Shown: positions 5,201-24,151, counted from the first letter of the stretch. The stretch is 64,000 bases of DNA from Marsupella aquatica (GCA_973895155.1 CCZZQB010000055.1:6115-70114), one strand, 5' to 3'. Numbers and translations are program-made. Notes: a model not told the origin generated them from the letters alone.

Positions 5201-5388
5201 CTCGCTGGTTAGGACCCTTTAGAGTAACCATGATGTTCCCCAATGGCTCCGTGCAATTGGCCAACATTACGGGAGAGGTATATCCAGTTCGCATCCATTA
5301 TGACCGCCTCAAGAAATACTATATGGACGAAGATGAAGTTGTTCGCGAGGACGCTTCACAATTAAGTGGGGAGCTATGTGATGCCTAG
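2122..5388 (+). CDS. pol: Pol (RT-RNase H-integrase), in the -1 frame relative to gag-PR
   Basis: RT motifs (DYRKLN, DGYSGYNQI, MPFGL, FIDD); RNase H (VDVSG, EREAL, TDH); integrase H..GHF..C..C, IDYIGP, SDRGTHF, ERAN. No internal stops. Confidence 0.97.
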   Translation: MGSSSRDNGFSAGVVAEPTGSTTPSIIGKELNTKGSAYKPITRAEQIEALLKAERAQRPNSQEQEVDEMDRHDLEPRQEGEPTTNSKPNRPVRGQSMDTKEGTDSASPAEIPVYGGMRLERLEAELDPNLKKQINMIQARQYRKLDLGEGRELNLGRNLAPELEKEINDLLIEFQDVFAWSHQDLKGVDPTLGEHRIDLMLGAKSFRQPIRRMNPKYSLLVKTEIDKLVEAGFITLVLHSDWVSPIVIVPKKAGPDGKPKIRVCQDYRKLNEATLKDHFPLPFTDMVLDMVASHELYSFMDGYSGYNQIRIRQEDQIKTAFITEWGIYVFNRMPFGLCNAPAMFQRLMVNIFHDYLRKFMEIFIDDFAVFGKASKHAKYLRKTFMRCREVGLKLHPDKCFFAVTEGVLLGHKVSRKGIEIDKGKLAVWLDIMQPKNIKDVRSFLGCIGYYHRFIKDFAKLALPLTNMLKAGADFEPTPERVTAVVELKQMLVEAPVMIAPDWNKDFHVFVDVSGFCIGSVLSQLDEKGRDHPIYFASRQLADAERNYSTTEREALGVIYSCKKFRHYLLGYKVIFHTDHESLKYLVNKPDLTGRVARWILLLQEFDYELRIKPGKLHANADFFSRITGKPATDCIDDRFPDEELFVVEIAGTWYPEILQFLSTSRLQPGLSREQAAVFVRKVRQYQCIKGILHKHGINGTIQRCLEKREVKRVLRAMHGEEAGGHFAPVTTSKKILNAGYWWPTLHKDVYQFIKQCDPCQRAGGPRASTRHPLHPILPLAPFEKWGIDYIGPLKPLTHPRRNKYIILATDYATKWVEARPTTKDDAITTARFMYEQIFTRYGAPLELVSDRGTHFLNDIISRLNEQYLVKHRPTTPYHPKANGLTERANGIIGKILNKTVAQNKLDWDDKLFAAVFAYNLAYKSTTGHTPFFLTFGQEALVPMQLEIPTFQVTIEERASAEESLKEREYRLEALEEARMISAERVEYRQNIMKQQYDKRLKVVSIHTGDLVLLYDSRYSRFPGKLYTRWLGPFRVTMMFPNGSVQLANITGEVYPVRIHYDRLKKYYMDEDEVVREDASQLSGELCDA
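2146..2205 (+). promoter_or_regulatory. Candidate -1 programmed ribosomal frameshift signal
   Basis: G_GAT_TTT at 2146-2152 in gag frame; 5-nt spacer; perfect 10-bp stem GGCGTTGTGG (2158-2167) / CCACAACGCC (2183-2192); loop GCCGA (2172-2176) can pair with TCGGC (2201-2205). Confidence 0.75.
5364..5376 (+). other. Polypurine tract
   Basis: AAGTGGGGAGCTA immediately before the LTR start TGTGATGCC. Confidence 0.8.
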
Positions 5389-8300: not shown

Positions 8301-10027
8301 TCAAGGCCGACCTAAGGGAGAAGGACGAGATGCTCGAACAGACTTACGCCAAGATGAACCAGATGGAGTCTGTCATCATTGCAGAGCTCGACAAGGAGCT
8401 AAGAGCAACCCAGGAGGAGAGGGCTACCTTGAAGAAGGAATTGGAGGAAGCCCACAGGGAGCAGGAGGAGGCCAAAAACGAGCTGGAGGGGGCACGTAAG
8501 GACCTGGATGAAACCCAAGAGGAGTTGGAGGAAATCACGAGGAAGATGGAGAACCTACAGCGGCGGGCCGACAACCAAACAGAGCGGCTGAAGAAACAAG
8601 CCGCAGTATTTAAATGCTTAGCTGCAGCAGGTCCATCTCCCGTTGGGACAAACCAGTTACCAGGGGTGGTAATTGCTGAAGGACAAGCCGCGTCAACTGC
8701 ACCAGTGCCGGAAGTAAGTGGGAAGGGGAAGGGACCAGCTGCCGAGCCACCAACGAAGAAGAAGCGGAAACCTCCAGGGTCAAGGAGTAATACGACTTCA
8801 CAGGCCGTGGTGATCAAGGAGGTAGACCCAGCACCGACCCCAGACAGGGTCACGGCTAAGGATCCAACTACCCTAGGGGAAGGGGAGGCCGAAGCCGAGG
8901 GAGTGGCTGAAGCCGAAGCCGTGGGAGTGGCTGAGGCCGAAGCCGTGGGTATTGCCGAGGCCGGTGTCGAGGCTGAAGCCGAAGGTGGACCCAGTCAGGC
9001 CGATGGAGAGTTGACTCGGTCAAGGGCAGGTAATCTGTCAGTAGGCGGGCCAACGGCAGTGGCTGAGGAGGAAGTGTTGGGGGCATCCATTGAGGATCCA
9101 CCACCGGTGTCGTGACGGTGCAAGGGCACCGTTCCTTTTAGGGAAGGCGGACGTGGAGGGAGGAGGCGTGAGTGGGCAGGGCGGGCGCGGATCTCCACGT
9201 TTAGGATTAGGATCAGAACCAGGAGCGGCCCTGACACTTAGCTTAGTGGGATTGCGGTCCCACTGGTAGGAGCAACACTTGTGCTCCTGCCTTGCTGTAC
9301 ATAGGTAGATTCGGGCAAGTAGATTACTGTTAAGTAGATTAGGCTTACGATGCAAAGAATGGCGGATCCACTACCAGGATAAGTACCTGGGCAGCGGGGA
9401 GCTCAGGGCCTCTTCTTTAGCAAGTTTTTAGTTTGCACCAGCCGGGCTGGGATCAAGTAGTACGAGAAGCTCTCGGTTAGTCATACAGTGACCCTTGTGT
9501 ATATTCATGTTTCCTCATGCCTAAGAGCTGAATAGAGTTGGCCTCACGGCTTAGTTCGCAGAACTTGTGTATGAGATGTACTGTTTGTATGGCAAGTGCA
9601 TGGTATGATTCAGTCAGAATGAGTCATTTTGCTATTTGTGTGTCGCATTAACTTGTGTGAAGAGTGCCCACATCAACAGAAGGAAGGAAAGTAAGCAGGG
9701 GAGTGAGAGTTGGATGTGTCGAGCTGAGAGAGGTCTTAGCGGCTTAACCGAGCCTATTGGGGATCATTCCGGCGGCGGAATCCAAACATACCTAACAGGA
9801 AGACAGGGGAAGACAGGGGAAGGCCTATATTAGGTCGGCTACGTATCTCATGACCCGATGAAGGATCTGTCCAGTATATGTGTGTAAAATGTTAATAGTA
9901 GTAGTAGAAGGTTAGCAGCGTCCCATGCCGCTAAGCCGCGGAAACGGCCTCGCCAAGCACGAAACCTGCGGGAATCGGCTTGAGCTGGGGGGTTTCTTGG
10001 GTTTAGGGAGCCATGGGACGCACCACA
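5377..10027 (+). repeat. 3' LTR of element 1 (family A, copy A1, 4651 bp)
   Basis: Begins TGTGATGC and ends GCACCACA; the same boundaries recur at 37328-41908 (-) and 50337-54897 (+), and the 3' end recurs at 59386 (-); preceded by the PPT. Confidence 0.92.
5750..9115 (+). pseudogene. LTR-embedded ORF (about 1120 aa): conserved retroelement accessory domain plus acidic/Pro-rich linker and long coiled coil; one premature TGA at 5999-6001
   Basis: ORFs 5453-6001 and 6074-9115 are in one frame; the stop aligns with an Arg codon (CGG) in copy A3. Contains the LPW...EF...T..YG...LT...I..VFGLP motif. Confidence 0.85.
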
Positions 10028-10689
10028 AACCCGAGCCGAAGATTCTGAGCGTAATTGAAGCATGGTGTCGTCCAGCTTCTTGAGTTCGGCCTGCGCTCCG
10101 CTTAACTCCTGGGTTAGTCCGTCCCTCTGTTCGACAGTGTGGACTAAATCCTCGCGGCGGGTCGTTGCCTCCTCCTCGAGGTGCTCTACCAGCATCTGGA
10201 GACGCCCGATCTCATTCCCCTTCGCCATGAGTTCTTCTTCCAAGCGGCTGACGATCCGTGGTTGGTGCTCTAACATGAAGAAGGCTGGCTGAAAGTACGC
10301 CGAGACTTGTTGTCCGATGTATGTCGCCAACTCCCCAGACATAGTCTGGCTAAACTTCTGGACCAGGTCGTAGGCCATGGTCCCCGGGGCTACTTGGTAG
10401 TCCTCCATCCTCTCGGGTACCGGTGGTTCCTCGGCAGGGGCAATGAGCTCCTCCGTAGTCAGCGCTGGGGAGGGGAAGGTTTCTTCAGGTGGTGGAGGGA
10501 TTGGGGGTGGTTGTACTGCAGGTAGCGGAGGCTCAACGGAAGGAGGTGGTGGAATTTCCACAGGGGGCGGTTGCGGAGTATTAGTCGGGGCTTCCGGCTC
10601 GGGGTTTGTCCGAGGGACAGTAGTCCGCGTAGTCGGGGTTGCCTCCTCTGGGGCGGGGGTGACATTACCCGGGGCTGAGGTGGCCATAT
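10028..10689 (-). pseudogene. Distal part of the LTR-embedded ORF of family B1, cut by element 1 on the left and the DNA transposon on the right
   Basis: Pro-rich linker then coiled coil (MATSAPG...SARV) running into the A1 LTR end; joins in frame to the ORF beyond 24151 when the transposon is removed. Confidence 0.75.
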
Positions 10690-10715
10690 ATCAGCCTATT
10701 CATTAAAAGTGTATT
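10690..10715 (+). repeat. Left terminal inverted repeat ATCAGCCTATTCATTAAAAGTGTATT
   Basis: Exact reverse complement of 24122-24147. Confidence 0.95.
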
Positions 10716-10740
10716 TTCTTTTGTTCACAAATCAGTCCTG

Positions 10741-10830
10741 AAATGTACACTTTTATGTCCCCAAATGTACACTTTAAGAAGCCCAAATGTACACTTTTTG
10801 ATACCTAAATGTACACTTTATAGGCCAAAT
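10741..10830 (+). repeat. Left subterminal repeats (AAATGTACACTTT)
   Basis: About 4 copies; the same motif recurs at the right end. Confidence 0.85.
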
Positions 10831-11078
10831 CTTATTAGTATTATATTAATATATTATCTTATATTAATTATAATAGTATTATATTACTTATTAGTTCACA
10901 AAGAACCATGGGATAGAGATCATACTTGTAAAAACATTTACGCACAAAGAAGCCTAAGCAAGGACCATTGATTGATAATGTGTGAAATAATTATATACAA
11001 TTGTGTCCAAACTTACAATGAATATCCAGGGCTGGCACCCATTTTTACTATCTAATGGGCTTAACATGAGTCAGATCT

Positions 11079-12203
11079 CTAAACAAAGTGCTCCTTACAA
11101 TATTTATTTGAGCACGTGCCCTTGTCTCCTTTACTATCTACCCTAATGTCACGGTTGCAACTCCCTTTATCTTCAGGGAGATGAAATTTGGTGGTGTTGT
11201 TCCTAACTGCTATAATCTCCCGCAAAAAGTGTCTGGGATTTTCTCTATACAGACCTGAATATTCCCGTCCTACAAATGATCTAGCAAGTGAGGTGACAAG
11301 TGCATCGTCAAGTTCCACCTCAGGACGTAAGCTACATATACGGTGCTTCACAGCCCAAGGAATCTCATTGCTATTGAGGTCCAACACACTATGCCTATAC
11401 TGTGACTTCCAAATTTTTGCTGCACATCTCTTACTAAGTTGATCATAAGTAATCTCATTTTTTGCCTTGTCTCTCTTAATGTGCAATAGAGACCACTTTG
11501 GAGAGTTTAGGAGAAGATAACAACGAATGTCACTTGCATGTGACAGTTTCTCAAGACATGGCCAAAGAATTGTTAGAAGAAAATTGTCTCCACGATTGGC
11601 ATGCGTGTAGGGCACTGGAAATAGTCCGGTCATGTCTGGGTTGGCAAATGCCTTTAAGGGGGAGTCATCCACAAGGAGTGTGTTGGTTTCATCATATAGA
11701 TTTCCAAATGCACTCCATACCACCCGAAAATCCTTCAATAGCACATTTGCCTTTCCATTTGTAATGTCACGCCTTTGAATGCCTGTGTCAAAGGCTTCCA
11801 CCTGTGTGAATACAAACTTCAGTTTCAACCGCTCCTCAACAGTGAACATCATGTTCAACATTTTCACTGTCCGCGGCATCCCAGCACATGTCCAAATTGC
11901 AACGTCAAACCGGTCAAAAACCAACTTTAGAAACTCATGGAACCCTGGCCTCTGTGTATACATGCGACTAGTTCCATTTGATCTATCCCAATGCACTCCA
12001 TTTGGGGTCACAATGTTTCTGGATTTGCCCTTGCTTTGGAATTCAAGTGAATCCCAAAGTATTTTGTTAAGATCCAAAATCAGCAACTTCCGCTTGATGG
12101 GACAAGGTCTCGATTCTGCAAGTGCAACAAATACAACTCTTAGAAAGAAAACCAAATTTGAACTTTGGACTGATTTGAATCTCAGTCCAAAAATACAAGA
12201 CAA
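11079..12203 (-). CDS. FCP1/NIF-family HAD phosphatase-like protein (transposon cargo)
   Basis: KLLILDLNKIL (DxDxT-like motif, degenerate), RPGFHEFL, FDVAIWT, TLLVDDSPLKAFANP. The true 5' boundary is probably an acceptor TTGCAG at 12116. Confidence 0.8.
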   Translation of the reverse strand: MSCIFGLRFKSVQSSNLVFFLRVVFVALAESRPCPIKRKLLILDLNKILWDSLEFQSKGKSRNIVTPNGVHWDRSNGTSRMYTQRPGFHEFLKLVFDRFDVAIWTCAGMPRTVKMLNMMFTVEERLKLKFVFTQVEAFDTGIQRRDITNGKANVLLKDFRVVWSAFGNLYDETNTLLVDDSPLKAFANPDMTGLFPVPYTHANRGDNFLLTILWPCLEKLSHASDIRCYLLLNSPKWSLLHIKRDKAKNEITYDQLSKRCAAKIWKSQYRHSVLDLNSNEIPWAVKHRICSLRPEVELDDALVTSLARSFVGREYSGLYRENPRHFLREIIAVRNNTTKFHLPEDKGSCNRDIRVDSKGDKGTCSNKYCKEHFV

Positions 12204-12352
12204 TGACTAACAACAAAGAAAACCTATATACCATTTTTAGAAGCCCCAAAGAGCGTAGGTGGATATCGAGGCTCTAATTGCTGACCGCATTCTGTGAGAC
12301 CGAGAAGTATTTTAGATTGGTATGAAAAAATGGAAAGTCAGACGGTTTGATC

Positions 12353-14728
12353 TCAGTCTGAAAAAAGAGATCCGTATTCATCAATAATGTCAACACCCAG
12401 CTCCTCTTGGATTTCAAAATTGACATCTGAAGTACTTTGTTCTACCCAATAAGGTGACGTCCAAACAGGAGTTATCAATCCCAATTCTCCTCTCTTATAC
12501 TCCTTCCTGTTAAGAATCGATGGAGCAGCATCCAATGAAACTTCTTGGCCTCTATTTGGCCCACTTTTCCACACATAACATCGTGCATCACGTTCAAGTG
12601 ACCTCCATCCGGTTGATCCAACTCTATTCCCTTTTTTCTTTGAGAGAGGAAGGACAACTGGACTTCCCGAGTGTGAACGAACAAAAACCAATTTGTCATC
12701 AGAAGCTGAAAAGAGTGTGTCAGGACAAATTGAAGCACCTGCCTGGTTGTCAACAGTCGCTGATGCACGGGCTTCTGGGGTCATGGGAATCTCACGTACT
12801 TCGACAGCCGTCCCGGGAATCAAATTTTGGGTGTCAGCTTCATTCGAATTGACCTGTCTGTCTCCACCGTCCGCGACCAAATTGGTTGACGAACAATTTT
12901 CAAATGTATCAATGTCAATCGGATCATCAATTCCGTCCATTTCTCGTTGCACCACATTTGGATTGAGACCATCCTTGTCCAAGTTGTCATCAACCTCAAC
13001 TTCATAGGGTTCCAAAGGGACGTCATCTGCACGTGATGAAGGGCGTGGTGCAAGACCAACGTTATCATCAACATCGTAGGGTTCTATGCTTTCACTTTGA
13101 CCTACACGGTCATCCAAATTCTTTGCATACGCCACCTCTGATGCCCCATCATCTTTGACTGACTTAGCGCCCACTTCTTTGGAATTATCAGCTGATTCAT
13201 GTTCGGTAGAAACATCCGCAATAGTGGGTTTCCAATGCCTAGAACTCCCACCACGAGGATCCCAATTTTCCTTGATTGAGGGGACCCTCTCGCAAAGGAA
13301 TGAAGCATACGCTTCCACAAAGTGTCTCTCATCTTGAGAGTCACAATAAACAAAGCATTCGCGTTGCACCAAGAATGCTGTCTTCATCACTTGACCACCC
13401 GAGAAAAAATCAAGAATCAAGTCTCCAGCTTCTGACAAGGATTCAATAATCCTCTGTATCATCCGCGTGGGTTTGGCATGTGGATTCACCCAACCACCAC
13501 GAGCACCAACTATCTCAAATCGAGGGGCCATGTGCAAAACCTTGGTCGCCTCTTCTGGGGTCAGCATCATTTTTAGATCTTCGGGTTTTGACACGTCGTC
13601 TATGTCAACCTTTGCCTTCCCAGTGTCAATCTTGGTGACCTCAAAATCAGTATCTTTTGAACCAAAAAAGAATTTTGGCTTTGGGTGATTGGGTTTGAAA
13701 ACATCATTCCAATTCACATTTTCATCTCGAGAAATTCCTGCAAATATAACTTCTTCAATTCCGCCTCCCCAACACGAATCAAGCGGGTGCGGTTGATCCT
13801 CTCGAGAATAACTCCCATACTCAATGTGAATGGTGAGAGATTTCTCTTGTCCCAATTTTCGAAGTGAGCTTAGGACATTCATTGCAAGAGGCCCCGGATG
13901 AACAGTTATGGCTACAACGATTGTAAGATTTTGTGGTAGCTCCACAATGTATTGCAGAAAGACCAAAACTTCTGCTTCCGTCCACAGCTTCTGGTGATCT
14001 CGACTGAAGTCAACAATGGCAAGTGAGCACGTTGGAGATGATTCTTCTATTGCTGGTGGATCAACTGTTTTCATTAGATTGTCACTAAAGAACGTGACCC
14101 ACGGTTGGCTCCGAGAATGTGTCCCTCCGCCAAACTTCTGGCAATAAATATCATCAAGGCGCATCACCAGAGCTATTGGCAAGATTGCACTCTCCCTGGT
14201 ATGATTTGGCTTCAACAGATTTGACAAAAAAACTTCACCAGCCGCTCTTCTGCATCTACTGAATTCTGCGTCAACACTCAACAATGGCAGAACCTCTACA
14301 ACTTTCTTCCAATCGGTATCCGAAGGGAAATTCCTTGGATCCTTGCCGAAGTAGTACTCCTCAATGAGAGACTTGAGCTTCCTCACTTTTTTCACATCCT
14401 TCGCAAGCTCCTCTATTGAGGGTATGTCAGATTTATTTGTGGCATCTTTCTTCAGCAATGCCTTTCCTGACTTCACTTGTGTCAGGATTTTTGTGATGTC
14501 TTTCTGTGAGATCAACTCACCATCAAAGGGACGAAACATGGCAACGGTAATTGCTTTTTCGGACTTGTTATTTCCTTCCATCCCAGCTCCATCAGGAAGT
14601 TTCCCATGCAACCACATCTCACAGACTAACCGCCACAACTCAAAAAGATCGTTGTCCACAAAAAGTAGCCAGTATACATTTCGCAAGTCCTTCCTGCCCA
14701 TAGTCATTCTTGCCAGAGCCAACCAATC
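12353..14728 (-). CDS. Exon 2 of ParB-like/amino-methyltransferase-like gene: beta-class N4/N6 MTase-like fold plus acidic tail
   Basis: HAKPTRMIQRIIESLSEAGDLILDFFSGG resembles HPTQKP...GDLVLDPFxGSG; upstream SLAIVDFSR sits at the expected DPPY position; acceptor TTGTAG ends at 14729, phase 0. Confidence 0.7.
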   Translation of the reverse strand, partial: DWLALARMTMGRKDLRNVYWLLFVDNDLFELWRLVCEMWLHGKLPDGAGMEGNNKSEKAITVAMFRPFDGELISQKDITKILTQVKSGKALLKKDATNKSDIPSIEELAKDVKKVRKLKSLIEEYYFGKDPRNFPSDTDWKKVVEVLPLLSVDAEFSRCRRAAGEVFLSNLLKPNHTRESAILPIALVMRLDDIYCQKFGGGTHSRSQPWVTFFSDNLMKTVDPPAIEESSPTCSLAIVDFSRDHQKLWTEAEVLVFLQYIVELPQNLTIVVAITVHPGPLAMNVLSSLRKLGQEKSLTIHIEYGSYSREDQPHPLDSCWGGGIEEVIFAGISRDENVNWNDVFKPNHPKPKFFFGSKDTDFEVTKIDTGKAKVDIDDVSKPEDLKMMLTPEEATKVLHMAPRFEIVGARGGWVNPHAKPTRMIQRIIESLSEAGDLILDFFSGGQVMKTAFLVQRECFVYCDSQDERHFVEAYASFLCERVPSIKENWDPRGGSSRHWKPTIADVSTEHESADNSKEVGAKSVKDDGASEVAYAKNLDDRVGQSESIEPYDVDDNVGLAPRPSSRADDVPLEPYEVEVDDNLDKDGLNPNVVQREMDGIDDPIDIDTFENCSSTNLVADGGDRQVNSNEADTQNLIPGTAVEVREIPMTPEARASATVDNQAGASICPDTLFSASDDKLVFVRSHSGSPVVLPLSKKKGNRVGSTGWRSLERDARCYVWKSGPNRGQEVSLDAAPSILNRKEYKRGELGLITPVWTSPYWVEQSTSDVNFEIQEELGVDIIDEYGSLFSD

Positions 14729-14967
14729 CTACAATCCAAAAGGAAAGCTAGTCAGTTATCCCCAACGCAAGGGTTGGAAAAAAAGGATTCTAATGTGTGA
14801 TAATAGTATTGGATTCGGATGGTCTCAATCAAAAAGAAAACTCGTACTAAACATTCCAAAAGTTCCAATACTCTTTGACAAATCGTGTCGGACTGAGACC
14901 ATCCGAATCCAAAATAGAATTACTCTCTATGGTAGAGAAATGCATACAAAGTAATCACATTTCTTAC
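14729..14967 (-). other. Predicted 239-bp GT-AG intron
   Basis: Donor CAG|GTAAGA and acceptor TTGTAG|GAT are both phase 0, giving NQKFQ-DWLALARM in frame. Confidence 0.8.
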
Positions 14968-16575
14968 CTGAAATTTTTGGTTGTCTTGAGCATTTGTTTT
15001 GTTGTCGCCATGTTTTGGTTTGTCTGGATTTCCATATTCAACAAACTGCCGCCTCGCATGGACAACTGTATCTTTAAAGCAAGATTGAAACACCATCGTG
15101 CTATTGATGGCGTTTGATCTCATGGAGTGCTCAACAAGAATTGAAGACGGTGTGCGATCAGACAATATTCTGGATTTCCTGAATTCTAACTTCTTGGCCA
15201 ACTGGGTGAGCTTGGCATCCTTCGTTGCCCAATCACGAATCCATCTCGCAGCTCTCGCAGAGTGCTGACCACTAACGGCTAGAAATTGGACCTCGCCCTT
15301 TTTCACTCCGGCCAAAAAATCCTTCCGGTCCGACTCCGTATTCTCAAAGTGGAGTACCTTTCTTTGCTCGACGTTAAAAGGAATCAAATCAGCGACATGT
15401 GGCTCATGCCCAGGTGTTTTGATCATGGAATCAGCAATGTCTTGCACATGATCAAAATTCATCATCCGATAGCATAGTCTCGCTGGTGCGGCAAAAATAC
15501 TTTCAACTGGGATCAGAAAAATTTCGTTTATCCCAAAAGTATAGTACTGCTCCATTTGTTGAAGAACTTCATTCCCTTCTAAGACGTCTTTCTCCTCTGG
15601 AGCATGTGGCCTATCACTCTCATCTTCAGCATGTAATGAAAAATCTATAGGAGTTGAATTCACAACTCCGGTGTCGGTTTTTTGTTTCTTCTTCTCCCTC
15701 GACTTCTTCTCGGCTGGAAGCTTCTTCTTCTCGGCTGGAAGCTTCTTCTTCTCGGCTGGAGCCGTGATCTTCTTCTCAACTGAAGTAGGTTTCTCAACCA
15801 GAAGCTTCTTCTCCCTCTGCTTTCGCTTCCCTGCCGCTCTATCCATGGTTGTTGTTGCAGTAGTTTGTGCTGTCTCCGTCGTAGTTGCTGGAGTTCCTTT
15901 GGCTGGCGTAGACTCAATTATTTTCTGTGGTTGTGTACTTTTCCTCAACTTCACCAAAGACTCTACCCATAGATTTGCTTTTTCCAGGTCAAGCGTGTGT
16001 GCAAAGGCTAGTGCCTTGGCGATCCAAACATTTGAGTCTGGTGACACCAGACCTGCTTTCTCAAGCAAATTGTTAAGAGTCCATGTGGATGGAAGAGAGA
16101 ACTTTGATGGGTTGTTTACAATGTTGAGTTTCAAATAAAGAAACCCATAAAAAATGTCCAAAGGAAGCATTCCCTTCAGTCCTCCAATAATCTTCTCCTT
16201 TGTGTAGGATTTTGGAAAGAATCCCATCGACAACACACTTAATTCCCCACTTGCATACCATTCCACATTGAACTCGGCCGAGAAAGCCTTTGTGGGGAGC
16301 TGCAACTTTGCCCACCTCATCGTGTCCGACACCTCTACAATGATAGAATTCATTCCTCTTCCTATCATTCCCACAGAGACCACGGGTCCGATGACCAATG
16401 TTTGGTTGTTGCCTGTCCTGATCTTGACACATAACACTGGATCCTGAATGTTAAATGAATTCAGGCGGAAGTTAACTCGCGAGAACTCAAGTCCCCACCG
16501 AAATCCTGGATCGCGGTCCTCCAAAATGAGCCCATCGTCGCAGTCTGCCTCTGAAATGGCGAGAGTTGTATTCAC
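14968..16575 (-). CDS. Exon 1 of cargo gene: unknown N-terminal domain, Lys-rich linker and ParB/Srx-like domain
   Basis: IPVESI...RMMNFDHVQDIADSM...FLAVSGQHSARAA resembles the ParB/Srx core ending in (D/S)G(Q/x)H(R/S); 21-bp repeats encode AEKKKLP. Confidence 0.65.
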
Positions 16576-16673
16576 CAGATCACTCTCTGCATTGGAGAGT
16601 GAAAATTCATATTAGACTTCAAATCCATGAAATTTGTTTTAAGAAATCACTGTCAAAGTGAGATTGAAGGCTC

Positions 16674-17340
16674 TTGGATTCGGACCATCCGAATCCAATA
16701 CAAGAAGCCCACTTGGATTCAGATGGTCCGAATCCAAACAACCCTCTTAGATTCGGACCATCTGAATCCAATCAAGCCACTTGGATTTGGACCATCCAAA
16801 TCCAAACAACCCACTTGGATTCGGATGGTCCGAATCCAAACAACCCTCTTGGATTCAGACCATCCGAATCCAATCAAGCCACTTGGATTCGGACCATCCA
16901 AATCCAAACAACCCACTTGGATTCGGATGGTCCGAATCCAAACAACCCTCTTGGATTTGGATGGTCCGAATTTAAACAACCCTCTTAGATTCAGACCATC
17001 CGAATCCAAACAACCGACTTGGATTCGGATGGTCCGAATCCAAACAACGCTCTTGGATTTGGACCATCCAAATCCAAACAACCCACTTGGATTCGGATGG
17101 TCCGAGGTTGTTTGGATTCGGATGGTCCGAATCCAAACAACGCTCTTGGATTTGGACCATCCAAATCCAAACAACCCACTTGGATTCGGATGGTCCGAAT
17201 CCAAACAACCCTCTTGGATTTGGATGGTCCGAATTTAAACAACCCTCTTAGATTCAGACCATCCGAATCCAAACAACCCACTTGGATTCGGATGGTCCGA
17301 ATCCAAACAACGCTCTTGGATTCGGACCATCCGAATCCAA
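16674..17340. repeat. Left palindrome array: about 34-bp units (TTGGATTCGGA-CCA/TGG-TCCGAATCCAA plus about 9 bp), 102-bp higher-order period
   Basis: Read directly; frame translations repeat every 34 aa. Confidence 0.92.
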
Positions 17341-17794
17341 CAACTTAAGATGCATGAATAAACCTCCGGGAACTTACTTTGGACTTGAGATTGAAATTCT
17401 TGGGAATCCCTAAGCGCTAGGGCCACAAGATCACCGACAGAGGAGAGATCCAAGTCATCAGATTCTTCGGCGAGTAGGACGATGACGGTTTTCTTGGAAA
17501 CTTCCATTTTTAGGAGTGACACGTGGCAGGATATACTGAGGACACGTCAAGATGGGCAAGATCTAGGGCGTTGCAGCAGATTAGGGCAAGAAGGCAATTA
17601 GGGCAAGGGCAAGGGATATCAGCGGCAGCCAGCCAAGAGCGAGAGCGAGGAGCGAGAATGAGGAGCTAGAGCGAGAGCGAGGAGCGAGAGGGAGGAGCGA
17701 GAGTGAGGAGCGACAGAGAGAAAACAACAATGAGGTCTGTGGAAGACCTCATCCTCCCTTTACCCCCTCCTGAAAGGCTTGTTTGCGTACGGAT

Positions 17795-17852
17795 GATCGC
17801 TGCACGGATCATCTCTGTACGGATCATCTCTGTACGGATCATCTCTGTACGG
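17795..17852 (+). repeat. 15-bp tandem repeat CGGATCATCTCTGTA x3
   Basis: Direct reading. Confidence 0.85.
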
Positions 17853-18502
17853 ATAGAGACCAAGAAGGGATCTGGTCCTATCAGTTTGGGTGGGACGCTA
17901 GCTGTATTGTCTGACACAATGGATTGAAAAAGGATTGGATGATTGTTCTAACCGCGATACTCGGTGTTGCCTCAACCTTATCGGATCGCACATTCAGGGC
18001 CGAACATACCAACCCACGAGTATAAGAGGTACTCTACGGACATCATTGTTGTTTTAGTTTCATATCTTCACTTGGGCATCCAGGTCTGCGCAACTCCTCC
18101 TCAGCTCTTCTCTCTGATGGAGTTTAGACTTGAAGTGGCTTTGATAGCTTTCTTAGTCAGATTGATATGAACTTATTCATCAATTTAGAGGTAGCAGAGC
18201 CAACCTTGGAGACATACTGGAAAAACAAGACTGCTGAGGTGAGTTATGGTCTTAGTCGCTTTGCTTATTTTGAGTTCTTAGGGAAGAGAGACGAACCCTT
18301 TCACTTTGTTCTGCATTCTAGTGACTTCCCAATTATTATTTCACGAATTACCCAATGTTCCGAAAAACCCGGAATGTCTAAATTTGATTAGGAAGAGATC
18401 TCAATCTCAATATATCCATCTCAACATAATCTTCATTGTGGAGTTAGACCATTTGAATCCAGACTTGATGTGTGGATTATAATGGTCCTAATCCTAGATT
18501 GT

Positions 18503-19633
18503 TGTTTGGATTCGGATGATCCAAATCCAATCCATTTCTAGGATTGGGACCATCTGATCAGATTCCAATCTTGGTTTGGATTCGGATGGTCCGAATCCAA
18601 GAGGGTGTGTTGGTCCGAATCCAACCGTGCAATGCTTAAATTGTGACCTTTGGGATCCAATCTCGGTTTGGATTCGGACCATCCCAATCCAAGCGAGATG
18701 GTAAATACAGTCTGGTTTTTGATTTGGATGGTCCGAATCCAAGAGGGTGTGTTGGATTCAGACCATCCGAATCCAAGCGTGCAATGCTTAAATTGTGGCC
18801 TTTGGGATCCAATCTCGGTTTGGATTCGGACCATCCCAATCCAAGCAAGATGGTTGAATTTGGGCGTTTTAAATACAGTCTGGTTTTGGATTCGGATGGT
18901 CCTAATCCAAGAGGGTGTGTTGGATTCGGACCATCCGAATCCAAGCGTGCAATGCTTAAATTGTGACCTTTGGGATCCAATCTCAGTTTGGATTCGGACC
19001 ATCCCAATCCAAGCGAGATGGTTGAATTTGGGCGTTTTAAATACAGTCTGGTTTTGGATTCAGATGGTCCGAATCCAAGAGGGTGTGTTGGATTCGGACC
19101 ATCCGAATCCAAGCGTGCAATGCTTAAATTGTGACCTTTGGGATCCAATCTCAGTTTGGATTCGGACCATCCCAATCCAAGCGAGATGGTTGAATTTGGG
19201 CGTTTGAAATACAGTCTGGTTTTGGATTCGGACCATCCCAATCCAAGCCGGTTTGTTGAATTGGGACCTTCGGGATAGAATCTGTGTTTGGATTCGGACC
19301 ATCCGAATCCAAGATGGTGGGTTGGATTCGGACCTTTGAAATACAATCTGGTTTTGGATTCGGACCATCCGAATCCAAGCCCGGTGCTCAAATTGGGACC
19401 TTTGAAATAAAATCTGGGTTTGGATTCGGACCATCCCAATCCAAGCGCGTTTGTTGAATTGGGACCTTTGGGATCCCATCTGGGTTTGGATTCGGACCAT
19501 CCAAATCCAAGAGGGTGTGTTGGATAGAGGTTGGTTTGGATTCGGACGATCCCAATTCAAGCGAGATGCTTAAATTTGACCTTCGGAATAAAATCTTCAT
19601 GGTTTTGATTTGGACCACCGGCCCCAATCCAAG
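18503..19633. repeat. Right palindrome array: same 25-bp palindrome, 168-bp higher-order unit in its core
   Basis: GATGGTCCGAATCCAAGAGGGTGTG-like block recurs near 18724, 18892 and 19060; frame translations repeat every 56 aa. Confidence 0.9.
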
Positions 19634-19747
19634 CGTGATAGTTGAGCCAATGTTTGGATTCTCGGAATGGCAATCAAATGACCGTATGGATAATTGTGAG
19701 TCTCTTCAAATTCTTGTCATTCGGATTTGTGATGGTTTTTCTGAAAA

Positions 19748-22700
19748 TTGTGCAGGTTACTAAATCCGAGAATGACTGGAAGGTTTTCAAGAGGTGATGA
19801 TGTGACCTTGACAATTGATGGATATGATGTCGGTTGTGGGACAGTTCAGAAAATTAACCCCCAGGATAGGGTGCACAACATATTGTTGGGGGATAATCGA
19901 ATTGGTGTGCTCGTGGAGAAGGTTTTCGAGCCAACTCGAAAACTACCATTTCCACTACCAAGGGTAGAAAATCTTTTTGATGCCATTGACTCATGTGTTA
20001 TTTGGGAGATCTCGTGCGCGTATCTCTCTATAACTCTAGATTCCCAAAAACGCATCAGTACTGGTAGTTGTTCAACTCGACCAGATAATAACTTGGATAA
20101 ATCTCCTACAATTGTTATGGAGGATGCATCAAACACTCTAAGGCAAGGGGACGAGGTTGAAATGCTCATTGATGGGTGTTGTGTAGCCCTTGGAGTTATT
20201 TTCAAGGTAAATCCAAAGGACCGATGTCACAACATATTACTTGGTGAGTCTCGGATCAGTGTGAAAATCACTGATGTTATTCATGGTAGTAAGGCTTTAC
20301 CTTACATACACAATGGGGCTGAAACAATTGAAGAGGCAAAAGACTCATGGGTTCTCTGGGACTTGGCCGATGTTCATAAAAAAGGTTGGAATGTTGATGA
20401 AGGTAGAAAGTCTTCCTCTAAGAAGCAAGGTGATGGCGACGTTTTAATTGAGGAGAGTTTTGTCTCACATTCTCCATCAACAAAATCGACCAAAACTCAT
20501 TCTGATTATTACCAACGGTCCAATTGGATGTCAGAGTTGGTCGAATTATACATTGGTTCAGGACGATCGAGTAAGGTTGCCACTGGGACTATCACTGTGC
20601 CTCAAGCAACGGCGGCTGTTGATGATGAAATCCTGGGAGAAGACTATGTAGGGGTTGCTGTGAAAGATGTCATGGAATCGCAATACTTTCCAAGCATTCA
20701 CAAGGGAGTAATTAGTTTGGTTCGATGGCGAATTGATCACACAAAACTAGTAGCAACTGGAAAATTTTTGTCAGACATTCTGGTAGAAGGTACAGAGAAT
20801 ATGGAGTCAATGGATAGGGATGATCTGAATCCGGATCATGTGGTTGGATCCGCATCCGGATGTCGTCAAAGGCCATATAACTTCAACAAGAGGAATCAAG
20901 TTGATCCTGTTGAGAAGAAAAGGAGGCTCTTGCAAACCAAGGCAGTTTCAAAAACAACAGAAGCCGCAATTGATGAGATCAAAAGAGTAAATTGCTGCAA
21001 GCATAAATGTTGTCTCATTATGCCAAGGGAAGATATAGAAGATGTTAGGATGGAATTTCACGGGATGTCTAGCGAGTCCAAAACATCACACATTTTCAAC
21101 CTCTTCCACTACAGAGAGGATGATGTTCGTGATAAGGGACACCATGTTCTCAAAGGTATGGTCATCTGTAAAGATGCATTTGCAACCATCCATGGTTTTA
21201 GTCACACCAAGTATTATGATTACAAGAGAAGATACATGGAGGGTTGCAAAATTGGGTTCCATGGGAACACAGGCTTGAAGAAAACAAGGTCAAATACCTT
21301 GCATGTGCGAGCTCTTCTAGAGGCATTTCTGACTCAAAATGCAGAGCCAATGCCTCATATGCCTTATGGAGGGGCTCATGGGACAAACAGCATTGAGTAT
21401 CGACTTCCAGCGTGTTACAAAAAGTTAGAGATTTTGGAAGATGTGAGAACAAAGATGAAGGAAGAAGGGCTTCCTCCTGTTACGGATAACACTCTCTACA
21501 AGATATGGAGCACATCATTTGCAAACTTCAGTTTTCACAAGGATGGCGCATTTGCCAAGTGTACGCTTTGTTGTGAATACAAAGACAGTTTGATGCGAGA
21601 GAGAAGGAAAAAAGAACGTGCTGAAATTGAAGAAAAAAGAGCTCAACATCTTCGTGAGCAAATGTCACGTAGATATGTTTACTACGCTCATCGAGTGATG
21701 GCCAAGCAACATCCAAGAGAATATCTTTGCATTATTCATGACAAGATGGATCAAGCAAAGACATGGATTCCAAAAATGGTTAGTACTCCTAAATCACTTT
21801 CGGGTCATGGAATGCCGCTACCTATCGCTCTCACGGGGATGTTGACCCACGGGAGAGATCCAGGAGTATATGCACACTTTAGTGTCACTGGCCTTTGGCC
21901 AGGAGATGCAGATTTCACAGTGACATCCTTGGCTAAGTGTCTTCGAGATCTTGAAGAGTACAATGGAGACAAGACAGGTGACATGCTTGATGGCTTGCAT
22001 TGGGAACCTCACAGACCTTTCTTTCAAGCCCTACTTGACTTTGATGCATTTTTGTCAGGATATTTGGAACCAAAGAATATTCAAGTAAATAGGTATATTG
22101 GTTCTGAAGATGGAGCTGCCGACAGTCAGACTGAGACCATCCCAACCCGACAGGATGAGGATGATGGAGGGGACGTGGGTGGTGAGAAGGGCAGTCCGTT
22201 GTTCATGCCCTTGCCAAGGCACCTAACATTGCAAATGGATAATTCAGCAAAGGACAACAAAAACCAAACGGTCATGGCATTTTGCTCGGAGCTTGTGAGT
22301 AGAGGAATATTTGAAACTGTTCAAATGTCCTTTCTAATGGTTGGTCATACGCACGAAGATGTTGATGCACTATTTTCCAAGGTATCATATCAAGTTCAGC
22401 ACAAGGAAGTTGCAACCCTTCTTGCACTAATGGCAGAGGTTTGGGAATGTGAGAGCATTCATCCAGTTCCAAGATTGATACAAGAAGTTGCATCTTACAA
22501 AGAATATCTTCAAAGTTTTAAGGTCAAAGATATTCAAGGTCACTCAAAACCGGTATCATTTCTTTTCTCTATGAGAGATAATGTACCAATATTTCAGTAT
22601 AAGTCCCATGTTAAGCAAGCTTGGGCTCCCGTTGGCGGAAGGTGCATTTGGGCAACTGATCCAATAACAAATTCTCTTCTTTTACCCAGTGGACAACCCT

Positions 22701-23563
22701 TAGCTAAATCCATAGGAGAGATACACAAAAAATCAGAAGAGATAATCCCATTCCTTAACAAGTACCTTGATTTTTTGAGAAGGAGTTGCATTGATGAGAC
22801 GTCAATAGCATACAAGGAAAGATTTCCTCTTGTTAAATATTGGGAAAGAATTGTGGAGCTGTTGTCAAATGGGCTTGCAATGGAAGGGGAGGGAAATAAT
22901 CAATTTCCATTGAAAAATGGATTTTGGCCTAAGACTAACCACAGCACTGGTTACAAGGTCAACCAATCGGCATGCGAACAGAGTGGTCCTCTAAGTGAAG
23001 ATGAGGAGAATGCAGAGATGACAGCTCTTCAAAATGAAGTCTTGGAAGAGATGGAAGATCAAGCAGCACCATTTGTTGGATCTCGAGCTGAGAGAGAACA
23101 AGGACAGTGGATTCCCCTCCAGGATATTTGTGAAGGAAACTTTGTGTTTCTTCGACCCGAGGATGATTGGGAGAAGAAAAATGGTGGAGGTCATTTCTGG
23201 TTGGTGAGAGCTTTGGGTCAGGTGGACCCTAAGCATGAAGTCCCAATTGCATCTTCAAGAGACCCTCCTTTGACTCAACAATATGCTCCAATGTTCCCCA
23301 TGGAATGGTGGAGGCCTAAACACTCTAAACTTGATGTGAGTGAGAGTGCTAGGTATCTCAATTGTTTCATGTCCACCAAGACATGGGAACGAGATCCAGG
23401 ATTTGGTGAGAACACTCAACATTGGCAGTATGCAAATTCTGCAATGTATGGTTTTAAATCTGGAATGAAGGAAGAAAACATGGTTGGCAGAGGTTTGAAG
23501 ATTCCTCGAAATGTTCTACAAACTGTCCAAAGTTATCTCCAAAGGATGGACAAGTACACTTAG
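19748..23563 (+). CDS. Sola-type DDE transposase with three N-terminal Tnp1/En-Spm-like repeats (first ATG at 19772)
   Basis: CCKHKC; FAKCTLC; catalytic-region motifs IIHDKMDQ, LQMDNSAKDNKN and FLMVGHTHEDVD; 1271 codons without a stop; lies inside the TIRs. Confidence 0.85.
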   Translation: MCRLLNPRMTGRFSRGDDVTLTIDGYDVGCGTVQKINPQDRVHNILLGDNRIGVLVEKVFEPTRKLPFPLPRVENLFDAIDSCVIWEISCAYLSITLDSQKRISTGSCSTRPDNNLDKSPTIVMEDASNTLRQGDEVEMLIDGCCVALGVIFKVNPKDRCHNILLGESRISVKITDVIHGSKALPYIHNGAETIEEAKDSWVLWDLADVHKKGWNVDEGRKSSSKKQGDGDVLIEESFVSHSPSTKSTKTHSDYYQRSNWMSELVELYIGSGRSSKVATGTITVPQATAAVDDEILGEDYVGVAVKDVMESQYFPSIHKGVISLVRWRIDHTKLVATGKFLSDILVEGTENMESMDRDDLNPDHVVGSASGCRQRPYNFNKRNQVDPVEKKRRLLQTKAVSKTTEAAIDEIKRVNCCKHKCCLIMPREDIEDVRMEFHGMSSESKTSHIFNLFHYREDDVRDKGHHVLKGMVICKDAFATIHGFSHTKYYDYKRRYMEGCKIGFHGNTGLKKTRSNTLHVRALLEAFLTQNAEPMPHMPYGGAHGTNSIEYRLPACYKKLEILEDVRTKMKEEGLPPVTDNTLYKIWSTSFANFSFHKDGAFAKCTLCCEYKDSLMRERRKKERAEIEEKRAQHLREQMSRRYVYYAHRVMAKQHPREYLCIIHDKMDQAKTWIPKMVSTPKSLSGHGMPLPIALTGMLTHGRDPGVYAHFSVTGLWPGDADFTVTSLAKCLRDLEEYNGDKTGDMLDGLHWEPHRPFFQALLDFDAFLSGYLEPKNIQVNRYIGSEDGAADSQTETIPTRQDEDDGGDVGGEKGSPLFMPLPRHLTLQMDNSAKDNKNQTVMAFCSELVSRGIFETVQMSFLMVGHTHEDVDALFSKVSYQVQHKEVATLLALMAEVWECESIHPVPRLIQEVASYKEYLQSFKVKDIQGHSKPVSFLFSMRDNVPIFQYKSHVKQAWAPVGGRCIWATDPITNSLLLPSGQPLAKSIGEIHKKSEEIIPFLNKYLDFLRRSCIDETSIAYKERFPLVKYWERIVELLSNGLAMEGEGNNQFPLKNGFWPKTNHSTGYKVNQSACEQSGPLSEDEENAEMTALQNEVLEEMEDQAAPFVGSRAEREQGQWIPLQDICEGNFVFLRPEDDWEKKNGGGHFWLVRALGQVDPKHEVPIASSRDPPLTQQYAPMFPMEWWRPKHSKLDVSESARYLNCFMSTKTWERDPGFGENTQHWQYANSAMYGFKSGMKEENMVGRGLKIPRNVLQTVQSYLQRMDKYT

Positions 23564-23784
23564 TTGTCACTAGCTAAGATATAATTAGATAGTTACTAGT
23601 TTTTATGTAAGAGTTATATATATTGTGAGACCATGCCATTGAGTGTTTAGTTACTTAGTAGACTATCTACTCATTTTCTAAACTTTTGATTATTATGAAT
23701 ATGAATGTTTATTTTTTCTGCATAATTAAAAATATTTTTTATTAATTTCTTTATTTTAAATGATTACAATAAAAGTTTTCAGGA

Positions 23785-24110
23785 AAATGTACACTTTTTA
23801 GGCCAAATGTACTCTTTATTGCACTCAAAGCTACACTTTCTAGACTAAATGCACTGAAATGTACACTTTTTAAGCCAAATGTATCTTTTTTTCACTCAAA
23901 TGTACACTTTCTAGGCCAAATGTACTAAAATGTACACTTTTTAAGCCAAATGTACATATTTGGATGCTCAAATGTACACTTTTCATTGCCCAAATATACA
24001 CTCTTTAGACCAATTGTACACTTTTTTATCCCCAAATGTACACTTTTCATTGGTCAAATGTACACTTTTCCAAGCCCAAAAGTACACTTTTCATTGCCCA
24101 AATGTACATA
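23785..24110 (+). repeat. Right subterminal repeats (AAATGTACACTTT)
   Basis: About 10 imperfect copies in the same orientation as the left-end copies. Confidence 0.85.
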
Positions 24111-24121
24111 AATCAAATAAT

Positions 24122-24147
24122 AATACACTTTTAATGAATAGGCTGAT
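24122..24147 (-). repeat. Right terminal inverted repeat
   Basis: AATACACTTTTAATGAATAGGCTGAT. Confidence 0.95.
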
Positions 24148-24151
24148 ATAT

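Follow-up and report, generated by a model that had tools for sequence, protein, structure and literature searches.

Marsupella aquatica carries, in the 64,000-nucleotide stretch of DNA analysed here (the window), two adjoining long reading frames that an earlier note had read as one spliced gene of about 1,330 aa, with a ParB-like part and a methyltransferase-like part. This raises the question of whether the frames form one gene, whom that gene serves, and whether its product would still methylate DNA. We suggest that it is a three-exon accessory gene of a DNA transposon, and that the product derives from a methylase but binds DNA or chromatin, with the element's own palindrome arrays as its likeliest target; we put the probability of this reading at roughly one half.

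The transposon carrying the gene

At the level of the locus, the gene lies within a DNA transposon of 13,458 bp (10690..24147), bounded by perfect 26-bp terminal inverted repeats (10690-10715 and 24122-24147) and flanked on either side by ATAT (10686-10689 and 24148-24151). A related element in C. fissa (L002:1267-15178) resembles it in its inverted repeat and is flanked by ATAA on each side. The paired flanks indicate a 4-bp target duplication, which we take to fit Sola transposons. The divergently oriented transposase ORF (19748..23563, plus strand, 1271 aa) matched only one profile, PF25273 (DUF7869, E 3e-43), and shares 58% identity with its C. fissa counterpart. Read depth over the element was very high, fragmented and polymorphic in four runs, indicating many copies.

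With terminal inverted repeats, a target-site duplication, its own transposase and multiple copies, the element is an autonomous, multi-copy cut-and-paste DNA transposon with a DUF7869 transposase. The ParB-methylase-like gene is cargo of this transposon rather than a host gene or a host epigenetic enzyme, and the order transposase, ParB-methylase-like gene, NIF-phosphatase-like gene is seen again in C. fissa and in Riccia sorocarpa. Subterminal AAAGTG[TG]ACATTTGG repeats are conserved between elements and probably serve as transposase sites.

Gene model and splicing

The reading frames of 536 codons (16575-14968) and 791 codons plus stop (14728-12353) were found as described before, and so was the canonical phase-0 intron between them. 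This intron 1 (14729..14967, minus strand, as all parts of the gene) is a GT-AG intron of 239 nt, with the donor CAG/GTAAG at 14968/14967 and the acceptor TTGTAG/GAT at 14729/14728. In C. fissa, a GT..AG intron of 199 nt lies at the identical codon boundary and in the same phase. The ORFs of two relatives (P0010 and P0011) end two codons past the same Q as exon 1, those of three others (P0004, P0007, and P0013) start with a CAG-encoded Q just ahead of the exon-2 D/E-W, and P0160 is a single unbroken ORF of 1009 aa that spans the junction. Because of the intron position in C. fissa, the ends of the relatives' ORFs and the unbroken P0160, the predicted splice is more than chance at the level of sequence comparison. 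The four read runs behaved as DNA: their contigs cross intron 1 unspliced, with no joint at 14729-14967.

The earlier 5' end was wrong, because position 16575 is GTG (and 16572 is AAT, neither being ATG) and the first in-frame ATG of the exon-1 ORF, codon 69, sits inside a conserved domain. We propose an additional exon 0 (17378..17507) with ATG, 43 codons and 1 nt up to a phase-1 donor (A/GTAAGT), followed by a phase-1 intron 0 (16587..17377) with its acceptor caatgcag/AG at 16587/16586. Exon 1 would then cover 14968..16586 (2 nt and 539 codons) and enclose the 536-codon ORF, and exon 2 covers 12353..14728 (791 codons and TGA). The C. fissa homologue of exon 0 has the same layout and a donor of the same phase, with two in-frame TAGs in that copy. 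As modelled from sequence, the gene has three exons and 43+1+539+791 = 1374 codons, and includes both earlier ORFs. The proposal of a single spliced gene is upheld by the comparative evidence, and the third, 5' exon replaces its length of about 1,330 aa with 1374 aa.

Predicted folds and altered motifs

The structural models, built on shallow alignments of 10-11 sequences, reached moderate confidence (mean pLDDT 64-70). They order the protein as a weakly PH-like domain, a Lys-rich linker, the ParB/Srx fold, a helical domain, the methyltransferase fold, an acidic linker, and a C-terminal domain. The N-terminal beta-sandwich and helix domain (16102..16530, exon-1 residues ~15-157, pLDDT 70-86) is only weakly assigned as PH/PTB-like, with VIA-align Z of 5-5.8 against PH, PTB, and FERM-F3 domains. 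The disordered linker (15580..15933, exon-1 residues 214-331, pLDDT below 50) contains a perfect 21-nt tandem repeat (15703-15760). The all-helical domain (14129..14728, exon-2 residues 1-200, pLDDT 80-90) showed no recognisable relatives outside the family (best Atlas score 0.64, not meaningful). Behind the poorly conserved acidic linker seen in the family alignment (12749..13261, exon-2 residues 490-660), the C-terminal domain (12356..12748, ~130 aa, ending in DEYGS) is kept in all full-length relatives and gave no fold match in the Atlas (scores of 0.38 or lower).

For the first of the two recognisable domains (15028..15555, exon-1 residues ~340-515, from Foldseek and VIA-align), the predicted structure supports a ParB/Srx fold over residues 350-489. 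The top 24 Foldseek matches of the exon-1 model were all ParB, Noc, PadC, sulfiredoxin or KorB, and VIA-align against Myxococcus xanthus ParB gave Z 8.7 and an rmsd of 2.2 A over 92 residues. The ESM Atlas concurred by shape. The ParB/Srx-like core claimed before thus stands as a predicted fold, which sequence models miss: none of the 11 family members searched had a ParB-clan Pfam match up to E 10, a range limited by the HMMER filters, which drop most matches above about E 0.1, and a profile search against the PDB returned spurious matches only.

Compared with ParB-parS, KorB-OB of plasmid RK2 and Noc, the fold matches (Z 6.7-8.7), and the topology places GERRxRA of the ParB clamps on GQHSARA here, within the family signature F..A[VI]SG[QA]HS (15259-15279, where AVSGQHS had been noted). 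Only G, H and S of this stretch are kept across the family, and the helix that bears ENxxR in ParB has S...N..N instead. The family conserves a pocket of its own (SG[QA]HS, R, S...N..N), but both the arginine patch (GERRxR) and the ENxxR CTP-binding residues are absent. Because these residues are missing and no ParB sequence model matches, the CTP-binding module that had been suggested is not indicated by the sequence. No HTH was recognised after the ParB-like domain, where the helical domain matches nothing.

The second domain (13262..14113, exon-2 residues 206-489, from Foldseek and VIA-align) is supported by the model as a beta-class DNA amino-methyltransferase fold over residues 206-488, whole from the N-terminal strand through motif II. 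Foldseek matched CcrM (E 8e-7), and VIA-align gave Z 16.1 for CcrM, 15.9 for MboIIA, 14.7 for RsrI, 13.9 for the rotifer N4CMT and 13.7 for PvuII. The motif order is circularly permuted (IV, X, I), as in these PF01555 enzymes of the beta class and in agreement with the earlier note. Structure prediction thus returned both a ParB/Srx and a Rossmann methyltransferase fold. Motifs X, I and II are recognisable and invariant in the family: NPxAKP (here NPHAKP) and LDFFSGGQ, whose LDFF is identical to RsrI, both at 13394-13486, and the acidic residue with which strand 2 ends (YCD).

At the motif-IV site (SLAIVDFSR, 14000-14026), strand 236-240 (LAIVD) leads into FSR, at an offset from the N-terminal strand that presumably agrees with the DPPY position of CcrM, RsrI, and MboIIA. 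DFSR stands where DPPY is expected, the family follows the consensus D-[FL]-x-[RH], and every family member lacks the two prolines as well as the aromatic residue of (D/N/S)PP(Y/F/W), in line with the degenerate catalytic motif described previously. In motif I, FSGGQ replaces FxGSG, and an invariant Gln takes the place of the second Gly of FxGxG in the alignment with RsrI. PF01555 enzymes have a folded target-recognition domain; here there is none, the corresponding segment being disordered in the model, and the two folds are separated by a helical domain of 200 aa. Pfam scored PF01555 at 26.4 bits for the whole of exon 2 and 27.3 bits for residues 1-490 (gathering score 26.7 bits), with the match limited to profile positions 163-212 of 221 in 10/10 members. 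The catalytic half showed no detectable sequence similarity to solved methyltransferases. D240, R243 and the cofactor motifs are strictly conserved, as would be expected of a binder and equally of an active enzyme with new chemistry.

An active 6mA/4mC methylase using DFxR as motif IV would mark transposon DNA, such as the palindromes, so that host silencing is evaded or diverted, with the ParB-like and helical parts for targeting. We consider this rather unlikely. The complete fold is kept, and the cofactor motifs and the motif-IV Asp are (nearly) invariant over highly diverged copies. The palindrome of the window also includes sub-sites of the GANTC type (GATTC/GAATC), and GANTC is the target of CcrM. 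Against this stand the lost prolines and aromatic residue, the Gln in motif I, the undetectable similarity of the catalytic half, and a presumed target-recognition segment (residues 346-417) that is low-confidence, acidic and poorly conserved. Liverworts do employ a PF01555 enzyme for 4mC, but the Marchantia enzymes retain TSPPY (bioRxiv 10.1101/2021.02.12.428880).

Those enzymes, MpDN4MT1a/b, and the bdelloid rotifer N4CMT share with our protein a eukaryotic setting and the same fold, and Marchantia is also a liverwort. Both are host genes with demonstrated activity that keep (T)SPPY (PMC8885841; bioRxiv 10.1101/2021.02.12.428880), whereas the present family lacks this motif and is transposon cargo. 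The catalytically inactive paralogues METTL14 and Tetrahymena MTA9 likewise keep the methyltransferase fold with a degenerate (D/N)PP(Y/W); METTL14 chains were among the Foldseek matches, and MTA1 and METTL3 chains reached Z of about 10-11 in VIA-align. Unlike our family, they belong to the MT-A70 clade, not to PF01555, and are partners of an active subunit, of which none is evident in this element. ParB_N-methylase fusions are common on phages and plasmids, and there too the ParB fold precedes the methylase; the Atlas neighbours were largely phage proteins. In contrast to those prokaryotic and phage enzymes, the present protein is eukaryotic, intron-containing and transposon-borne, with no prokaryotic or viral relative detectable by sequence.

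Palindrome arrays, neighbouring gene, and proposed role

Most likely, the product serves the transposon as a DNA-binding factor derived from a methylase, either non-canonical or inactive; it would then not be a conventional DNA amino-methylase, and may still bind a cofactor. Its likeliest target would be the palindromes of the element. Intron 0 contains an array (16671-17344) of ~20 copies of a 25-bp palindrome with a period of 34 bp, and a second array of the same palindrome lies on the transposase side of the central region (18506..19558). The arrays are in the first introns that flank the central bidirectional promoter region on either side. Intron 1 has two degenerate copies (half-sites at 14809 and 14902). 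All palindrome half-sites in the window (49/49) fall within the element.

In C. fissa, the intron equivalent to intron 0 also harbors an array (L002:8007-8467), the counterpart of intron 1 likewise has palindrome copies, and 25/25 matches in the 22.7-kb locus fall within the element (1267-15178). The arrays of the two species occupy equivalent introns with periods of 34 and 35 bp, and their sequences are unrelated; the Riccia element has yet another set of palindromes. The putative link between palindrome and protein is one of position and co-variation across three lineages. By adjoining palindrome arrays that flank promoters, the gene resembles the ParB clamps, with the arrays as candidate sites by position, and binding could control transcription or transposition, as KorB and ParB do on palindromic operators or parS. 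The palindromes could instead be bound by the N-terminal part of the transposase, by the C-terminal domain or by a host factor.

Downstream of the gene lies an ORF for a NIF/FCP1-like phosphatase (11079..12203, minus strand; PF03031, E 3e-15). It reads DLNKI in the window and in C. fissa, and DVEGL in Riccia, where DxDx(T/V) is expected. The two genes could be an anti-silencing pair of pseudo-enzymes that sequester host factors (chromatin, RNA polymerase CTD, methylation machinery) or cofactor, with no specific binding of element DNA. In favor of such decoys, both genes keep a fold or family match with conserved substitutions at catalytic positions, their linkage is maintained in four genomes or contigs (the window, C. 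fissa, Riccia, and the ENA contig L004), and Riccia gene models fuse them. Still, this explanation seems doubtful to us, even more so than an active methylase: it does not account for element- and lineage-specific palindrome arrays at conserved positions or for the conserved ParB-like pocket, and no result indicates a host partner.

The non-canonical motifs of both recognisable domains and the two stops in C. fissa exon 0 could also be expected of a captured ParB-methylase gene of prokaryotic or viral type that decays as a functionless hitch-hiker. We regard this as improbable. Both large exons are intact in C. fissa at just 38-39% identity (58% for the transposase), so that frames of 539 and 791 codons stay open in two species with intron position and phase kept, and dozens of residues are invariant. 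The architecture recurs under other accessions: AlphaFold DB entries A0A388MEC1, A0A388LX61, A0A388KSX7, and A7RT40 match both structural models, and seven further relatives (P0031, P0076, P0106, P0104, P0145, P0083, and P0109) carry both halves together. Sequence searches detected no prokaryotic or viral relatives of the gene. In favor of selection for function, the coding-sequence deletions among copy variants are in frame (267 and 447 nt); more weakly, the listed variants include 14 synonymous and 20 non-synonymous changes (~22% synonymous expected).

A host gene, domesticated or merely lying between repeats, is highly improbable, since intact ORFs are all that favors it, against the enclosing repeats and duplication, the same order in a similarly bounded C. 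fissa element, the read depth, and the many diverged paralogues in Riccia.

Finally, other mobile elements also carry accessory genes of a DNA-modification or ParB-like type. The ESM-feature neighbours of the ParB-like domain were fungal DUF3723 clusters (score 0.95-0.96), a likeness of ESM features that Pfam did not confirm, as the DUF3723 model (PF12520) gave no match. DUF3723 is reported to be an accessory gene conserved in Starship elements of fungi (bioRxiv 10.1101/2021.12.13.472469). Dinoflagellate and charophyte retrotransposons carry DNMTs (PMC5890265); those are C5 enzymes, whereas the fold described here is of the amino-methyltransferase type and sits in a mobile element of a different class.

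Gene structure and splicing

Comparative evidence indicates that the transposon-borne gene on the minus strand of the window is spliced, and its predicted product combines a ParB/Srx fold with a beta-class methyltransferase fold in which the catalytic motif is replaced. We consider, with a probability of roughly one half, that its product is a non-canonical or inactive methylase-derived factor that binds DNA or chromatin as an accessory of the element, possibly on palindrome arrays.

The two large exons had been described in the earlier note, and the window sequence agrees with it on the codon counts, the intron, and the motifs. ORFs of 536 codons (16575-14968) and of 791 codons plus stop (14728-12353) are separated by a 239-nt phase-0 intron (intron 1, 14967-14729) that starts CAG/GTAAG and ends TTGTAG/GAT, and the peptides quoted then were located at 15259-15279 (AVSGQHS), 14000-14026 (SLAIVDFSR) and 13394-13486 (NPHAKP...LDFFSGG). 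Comparison of homologous sequences gives good evidence for intron 1. Calypogeia fissa has a GT..AG intron of 199 nt between its counterparts of the two exons, at the identical codon boundary, and its annotated proteins P0002 and P0031 run straight through this boundary. ORFs from other assemblies (P0010 and P0011) terminate two codons past the same Gln as exon 1, and three more (P0004, P0007, and P0013) start with a CAG-encoded Gln just ahead of the D/E-W that opens exon 2. Both halves lie within a single unbroken 1009-aa ORF on an ENA contig (P0160) and within several Riccia sorocarpa proteins. Four public runs behave as genomic DNA at this stretch: their contigs cross intron 1 unspliced, with no joint at 14729-14967, and read depth is very high, fragmented, and rich in variants.

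The joining of the two ORFs into one gene is supported by these comparisons, but the 5' end and the length of about 1,330 aa proposed with it do not. Translation from 16575 or 16572 was rejected since there is no ATG at either (the codons are GTG and AAT), and the earliest in-frame ATG is codon 69, within the conserved N-terminal domain. We propose an exon 0 (17507-17378) with an ATG at 17507, 43 codons plus one base, and a donor A/GTAAGT at 17378/17377; the acceptor of the proposed intron 0 (17377-16587) is caatgcag/AG at 16587/16586. Donor and acceptor are both phase 1, which gives 1374 codons in total. C. fissa presents the same exon 0 layout in the same phase. Its short 5' exon (L002:7808-7952, in the C. 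fissa locus) contains two in-frame TAG codons, and both large exons are intact; this copy may be partly decayed, or its start may lie elsewhere.

Domains of the cargo protein

The AlphaFold model of exon 1 has a mean pLDDT of 64, with values of 80-92 in its C-terminal domain. There, residues 350-489 adopt a predicted ParB/Srx fold: every one of the best 24 Foldseek matches is a ParB, Noc, PadC, sulfiredoxin, or KorB structure, and the VIA-align Z is 8.7 (rmsd 2.2 A over 92 residues). The ParB/Srx assignment made from sequence alone is therefore upheld by structure prediction. At the level of sequence models, 11 members gave no Pfam ParB match with a cut-off of E 10 (the filters discard most matches weaker than about 0.1), NCBIfam gave no ParB model match for the cargo protein, and a profile search of this part against PDB returned only a repeat-inflated fimbrial artefact. 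At the topological place where ParB has GERRxRA, the cargo protein has GQHSARA. The family conserves F430, S434, G435, H437, S438, R465, S483, N487, and N490 in this domain, so a conserved pocket is present, but it differs from the CTP-binding arginine patch of ParB, and the suggestion of a CTP-binding module was not borne out. Upstream, an N-terminal domain (residues ~15-157, window 16102-16530, minus strand) is predicted to fold into a beta-sandwich followed by a helix at its C-terminal end, weakly PH/PTB/FERM-F3-like (Z 5-5.8), and it is kept in P0010, P0011, and C. fissa.

Within exon 2, the model of residues 1-490 (mean pLDDT 70) shows a confident helical domain (residues 1-200) followed by an alpha/beta domain. 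Over its whole length, beginning with the first strand, the latter aligns with CcrM (Z 16.1), MboIIA (15.9), RsrI (14.7), the rotifer N4CMT (13.9), and PvuII (13.7), so the methyltransferase fold proposed from sequence also passes the structural check. Among sequence models, PF01555 covers only residues 416-465 (positions 163-212 in a profile of 221), with a score close to the gathering threshold, in 10/10 family members. No sequence similarity was detected between the catalytic half and solved methyltransferases in PDB. ESM Atlas searches for the identity of the helical domain (score 0.64) and of the C-terminal domain (0.38) were uninformative.

The degenerate motif IV reported earlier is confirmed as DFSR in place of DPPY, with a family consensus of D-[FL]-x-[RH]. 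The strand 236-240 (LAIVD), followed by F-S-R, falls at the expected DPPY place by its offset from the aligned N-terminal strands, given where DPPY lies in CcrM, RsrI, and MboIIA. The expected target-recognition segment (residues 346-417) is acidic and variable, with a pLDDT of ~30. Conservation is striking on the cofactor side, where N415, K419, P420, and D440-V447 (DFFSGGQV) are invariant, as are R456, C458, E467, F470, and Y474. This side aligns with M.RsrI, with which it has LDFF in common, but all members carry Gln in place of the second Gly of FxGxG. An active methylase that uses a new motif IV and marks its own element is a rather unlikely account.

The linked gene and the transposon

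A NIF/FCP1-like phosphatase ORF (PF03031, E 3e-15; relatives L002:13644-14607 and P0126) lies 3' of the cargo gene at window 11079-12203, on the minus strand. It has no ATG ahead of the domain and a good acceptor, cacttgcag/AA (~12117), so an upstream exon is needed. The Riccia gene models P0052, P0091, and P0126 fuse the NIF-like part to the methylase-like part, and the ORF may be attached through alternative splicing; as an obligatory C-terminus of the cargo protein it was rejected, since the stop after DEYGS is kept in relatives. Instead of the HAD-phosphatase DxDx(T/V), it carries DLNKI, as does C. fissa, and a Riccia relative carries DVEGL. This makes it a second cargo 'enzyme' with a conserved non-canonical catalytic motif. 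Cargo protein and pseudo-phosphatase acting together as a pair of decoys is an unlikely reading.

The ParB-methylase-like gene is carried as cargo by a DNA transposon of 13,458 bp (10690-24147), with 26-bp perfect terminal inverted repeats and ATAT on both flanks. In the C. fissa relative (L002:1267-15178), the inverted repeat is similar and the flanks are ATAA/ATAA, which points to a target duplication of 4 bp. Subterminal AAAGTGTACATTTGG repeats are common to both elements and are probably transposase sites. The divergent transposase ORF (19748-23563, plus strand, 1271 aa) has PF25273 (DUF7869) as its only family match and gave no match to PDB sequences. The order of transposase (on the opposite strand), ParB-methylase-like gene, and NIF-like gene is identical in the window, C. 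fissa, and Riccia, and on an ENA contig NIF likewise follows the cargo gene. A host gene is hardly credible beside these element ends and this shared order. Just beyond the right element end, at 24294-25607 on the minus strand, there is a 437-aa ORF without a Pfam match.

Against C. fissa, the transposase is 58% identical and NIF 53%, and the two large exons reach only 38-39%, yet both exons are still open. As judged from sequence, the cargo gene is conserved as an open frame over deep divergence. That it is a decaying passenger, as the interrupted 5' exon of C. fissa might be read, is improbable beside these open frames.

Among 1.84 billion proteins, a profile search returned only 210 matches, essentially the family itself, and the named ones are from liverworts. 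With Foldseek against the AlphaFold DB, A0A388MEC1, A0A388LX61, A0A388KSX7, and A7RT40 each match both models as single proteins, so the architecture probably reaches beyond liverworts. The A0A388 accessions are probably Chara braunii and A7RT40 probably Nematostella, and nothing concluded here depends on these identities. For a prokaryotic or viral source, no relative was found in the viral and genome contigs scanned with the family alignment.

Palindrome arrays and a possible role of the cargo protein

The proposed intron 0 contains about 20 copies of a 25-bp palindrome with core GGATTCGGA-N4-TCCGAATCC at a 34-bp period (16671-17344). A second array of the same palindrome lies on the transposase side (18506-19558), and two degenerate copies are found in intron 1. 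All the half-sites in the 64-kb window (49/49) fall inside the element. The central 4 nt flip orientation between adjacent copies. The transposase ORF opens at a non-ATG codon (TTG) directly 3' of the second array; this opening fits a mirrored arrangement on the transposase side, with a 5' exon and an intron that holds the array.

C. fissa has an array of 35-bp period in the equivalent intron, copies in intron 1, and a further array ahead of NIF, built on an unrelated palindrome, CCTCGAGA-N3-TCTCGAGG, and the Riccia palindromes are different again (arrays at L002:8007-8467, 10172-10260, and 13051-13439, and at L003:9211-9721 for Riccia). The three liverwort elements have arrays at equivalent places in the introns flanking the central region, with sequence unrelated per lineage and, for the window and C. 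fissa, nearly equal periods. Position and period are kept and sequence turns over alongside a fast-evolving cargo protein, as might be expected of a putative co-evolving protein-site pair.

For the accessory factor that we favour, the candidate place of action is the set of palindrome arrays that surround the central promoter region. We hold a more specific version to be less probable: the cargo protein would bind the element's own intronic palindromes, a self-recognition like that of ParB-parS or KorB-operator inside a DNA transposon of a eukaryote. At these sites, the methylase-derived module would either deposit a mark (6mA or 4mC) or, without catalysis, clamp or flip bases. In this way, the element could control its own bidirectional promoter, tether its excised DNA or partition it, or gain protection from host silencing; in each liverwort lineage, the specificity of recognition and the palindrome would evolve together.

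Precedents exist for ParB-methylase fusions, for inactive methyltransferase paralogues, and for C5 methyltransferases borne by transposons. In the searchable literature we found no DNA-transposon-borne protein of PF01555 and ParB folds with DFxR for DPPY, linked to a NIF-like gene and to lineage-specific palindrome arrays, no account of ParB- or methylase-type cargo in DNA transposons, Sola elements included, and no paper on DUF7869. Eukaryotic cut-and-paste transposons are usually held to carry little besides a transposase. Here, one element keeps a three-gene module (transposase, ParB-fold/methylase-fold protein, and phosphatase-like protein) across deeply diverged liverworts and, by the structural matches, probably also outside them. 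Both cargo 'enzymes' have conserved non-canonical active sites, and the lineage-specific arrays sit at fixed places in the element. This offers a tractable system for the self-regulation or protection of a eukaryotic mobile element by parts of prokaryotic origin, and raises the question of whether cofactor binding, base flipping, or methylation persists in a PF01555 fold that lacks DPPY. PF01555 matches in plant genomes, for example in searches for 6mA/4mC writers, may be transposon cargo without the canonical catalytic motif and call for caution in annotation.

Finally, variant copies of the cargo gene were seen. Contigs of three public runs lack 267 nt (window 15531-15799) in the Lys-rich linker, and contigs of one run lack 447 nt (13708-14156) within the helical and methylase-fold domains; both lengths are multiples of three, leaving the reading frame intact. 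A perfect 21-nt tandem repeat (15703-15760, minus strand, 2.8 copies) encodes the repeated KKKLPAE of this disordered linker.
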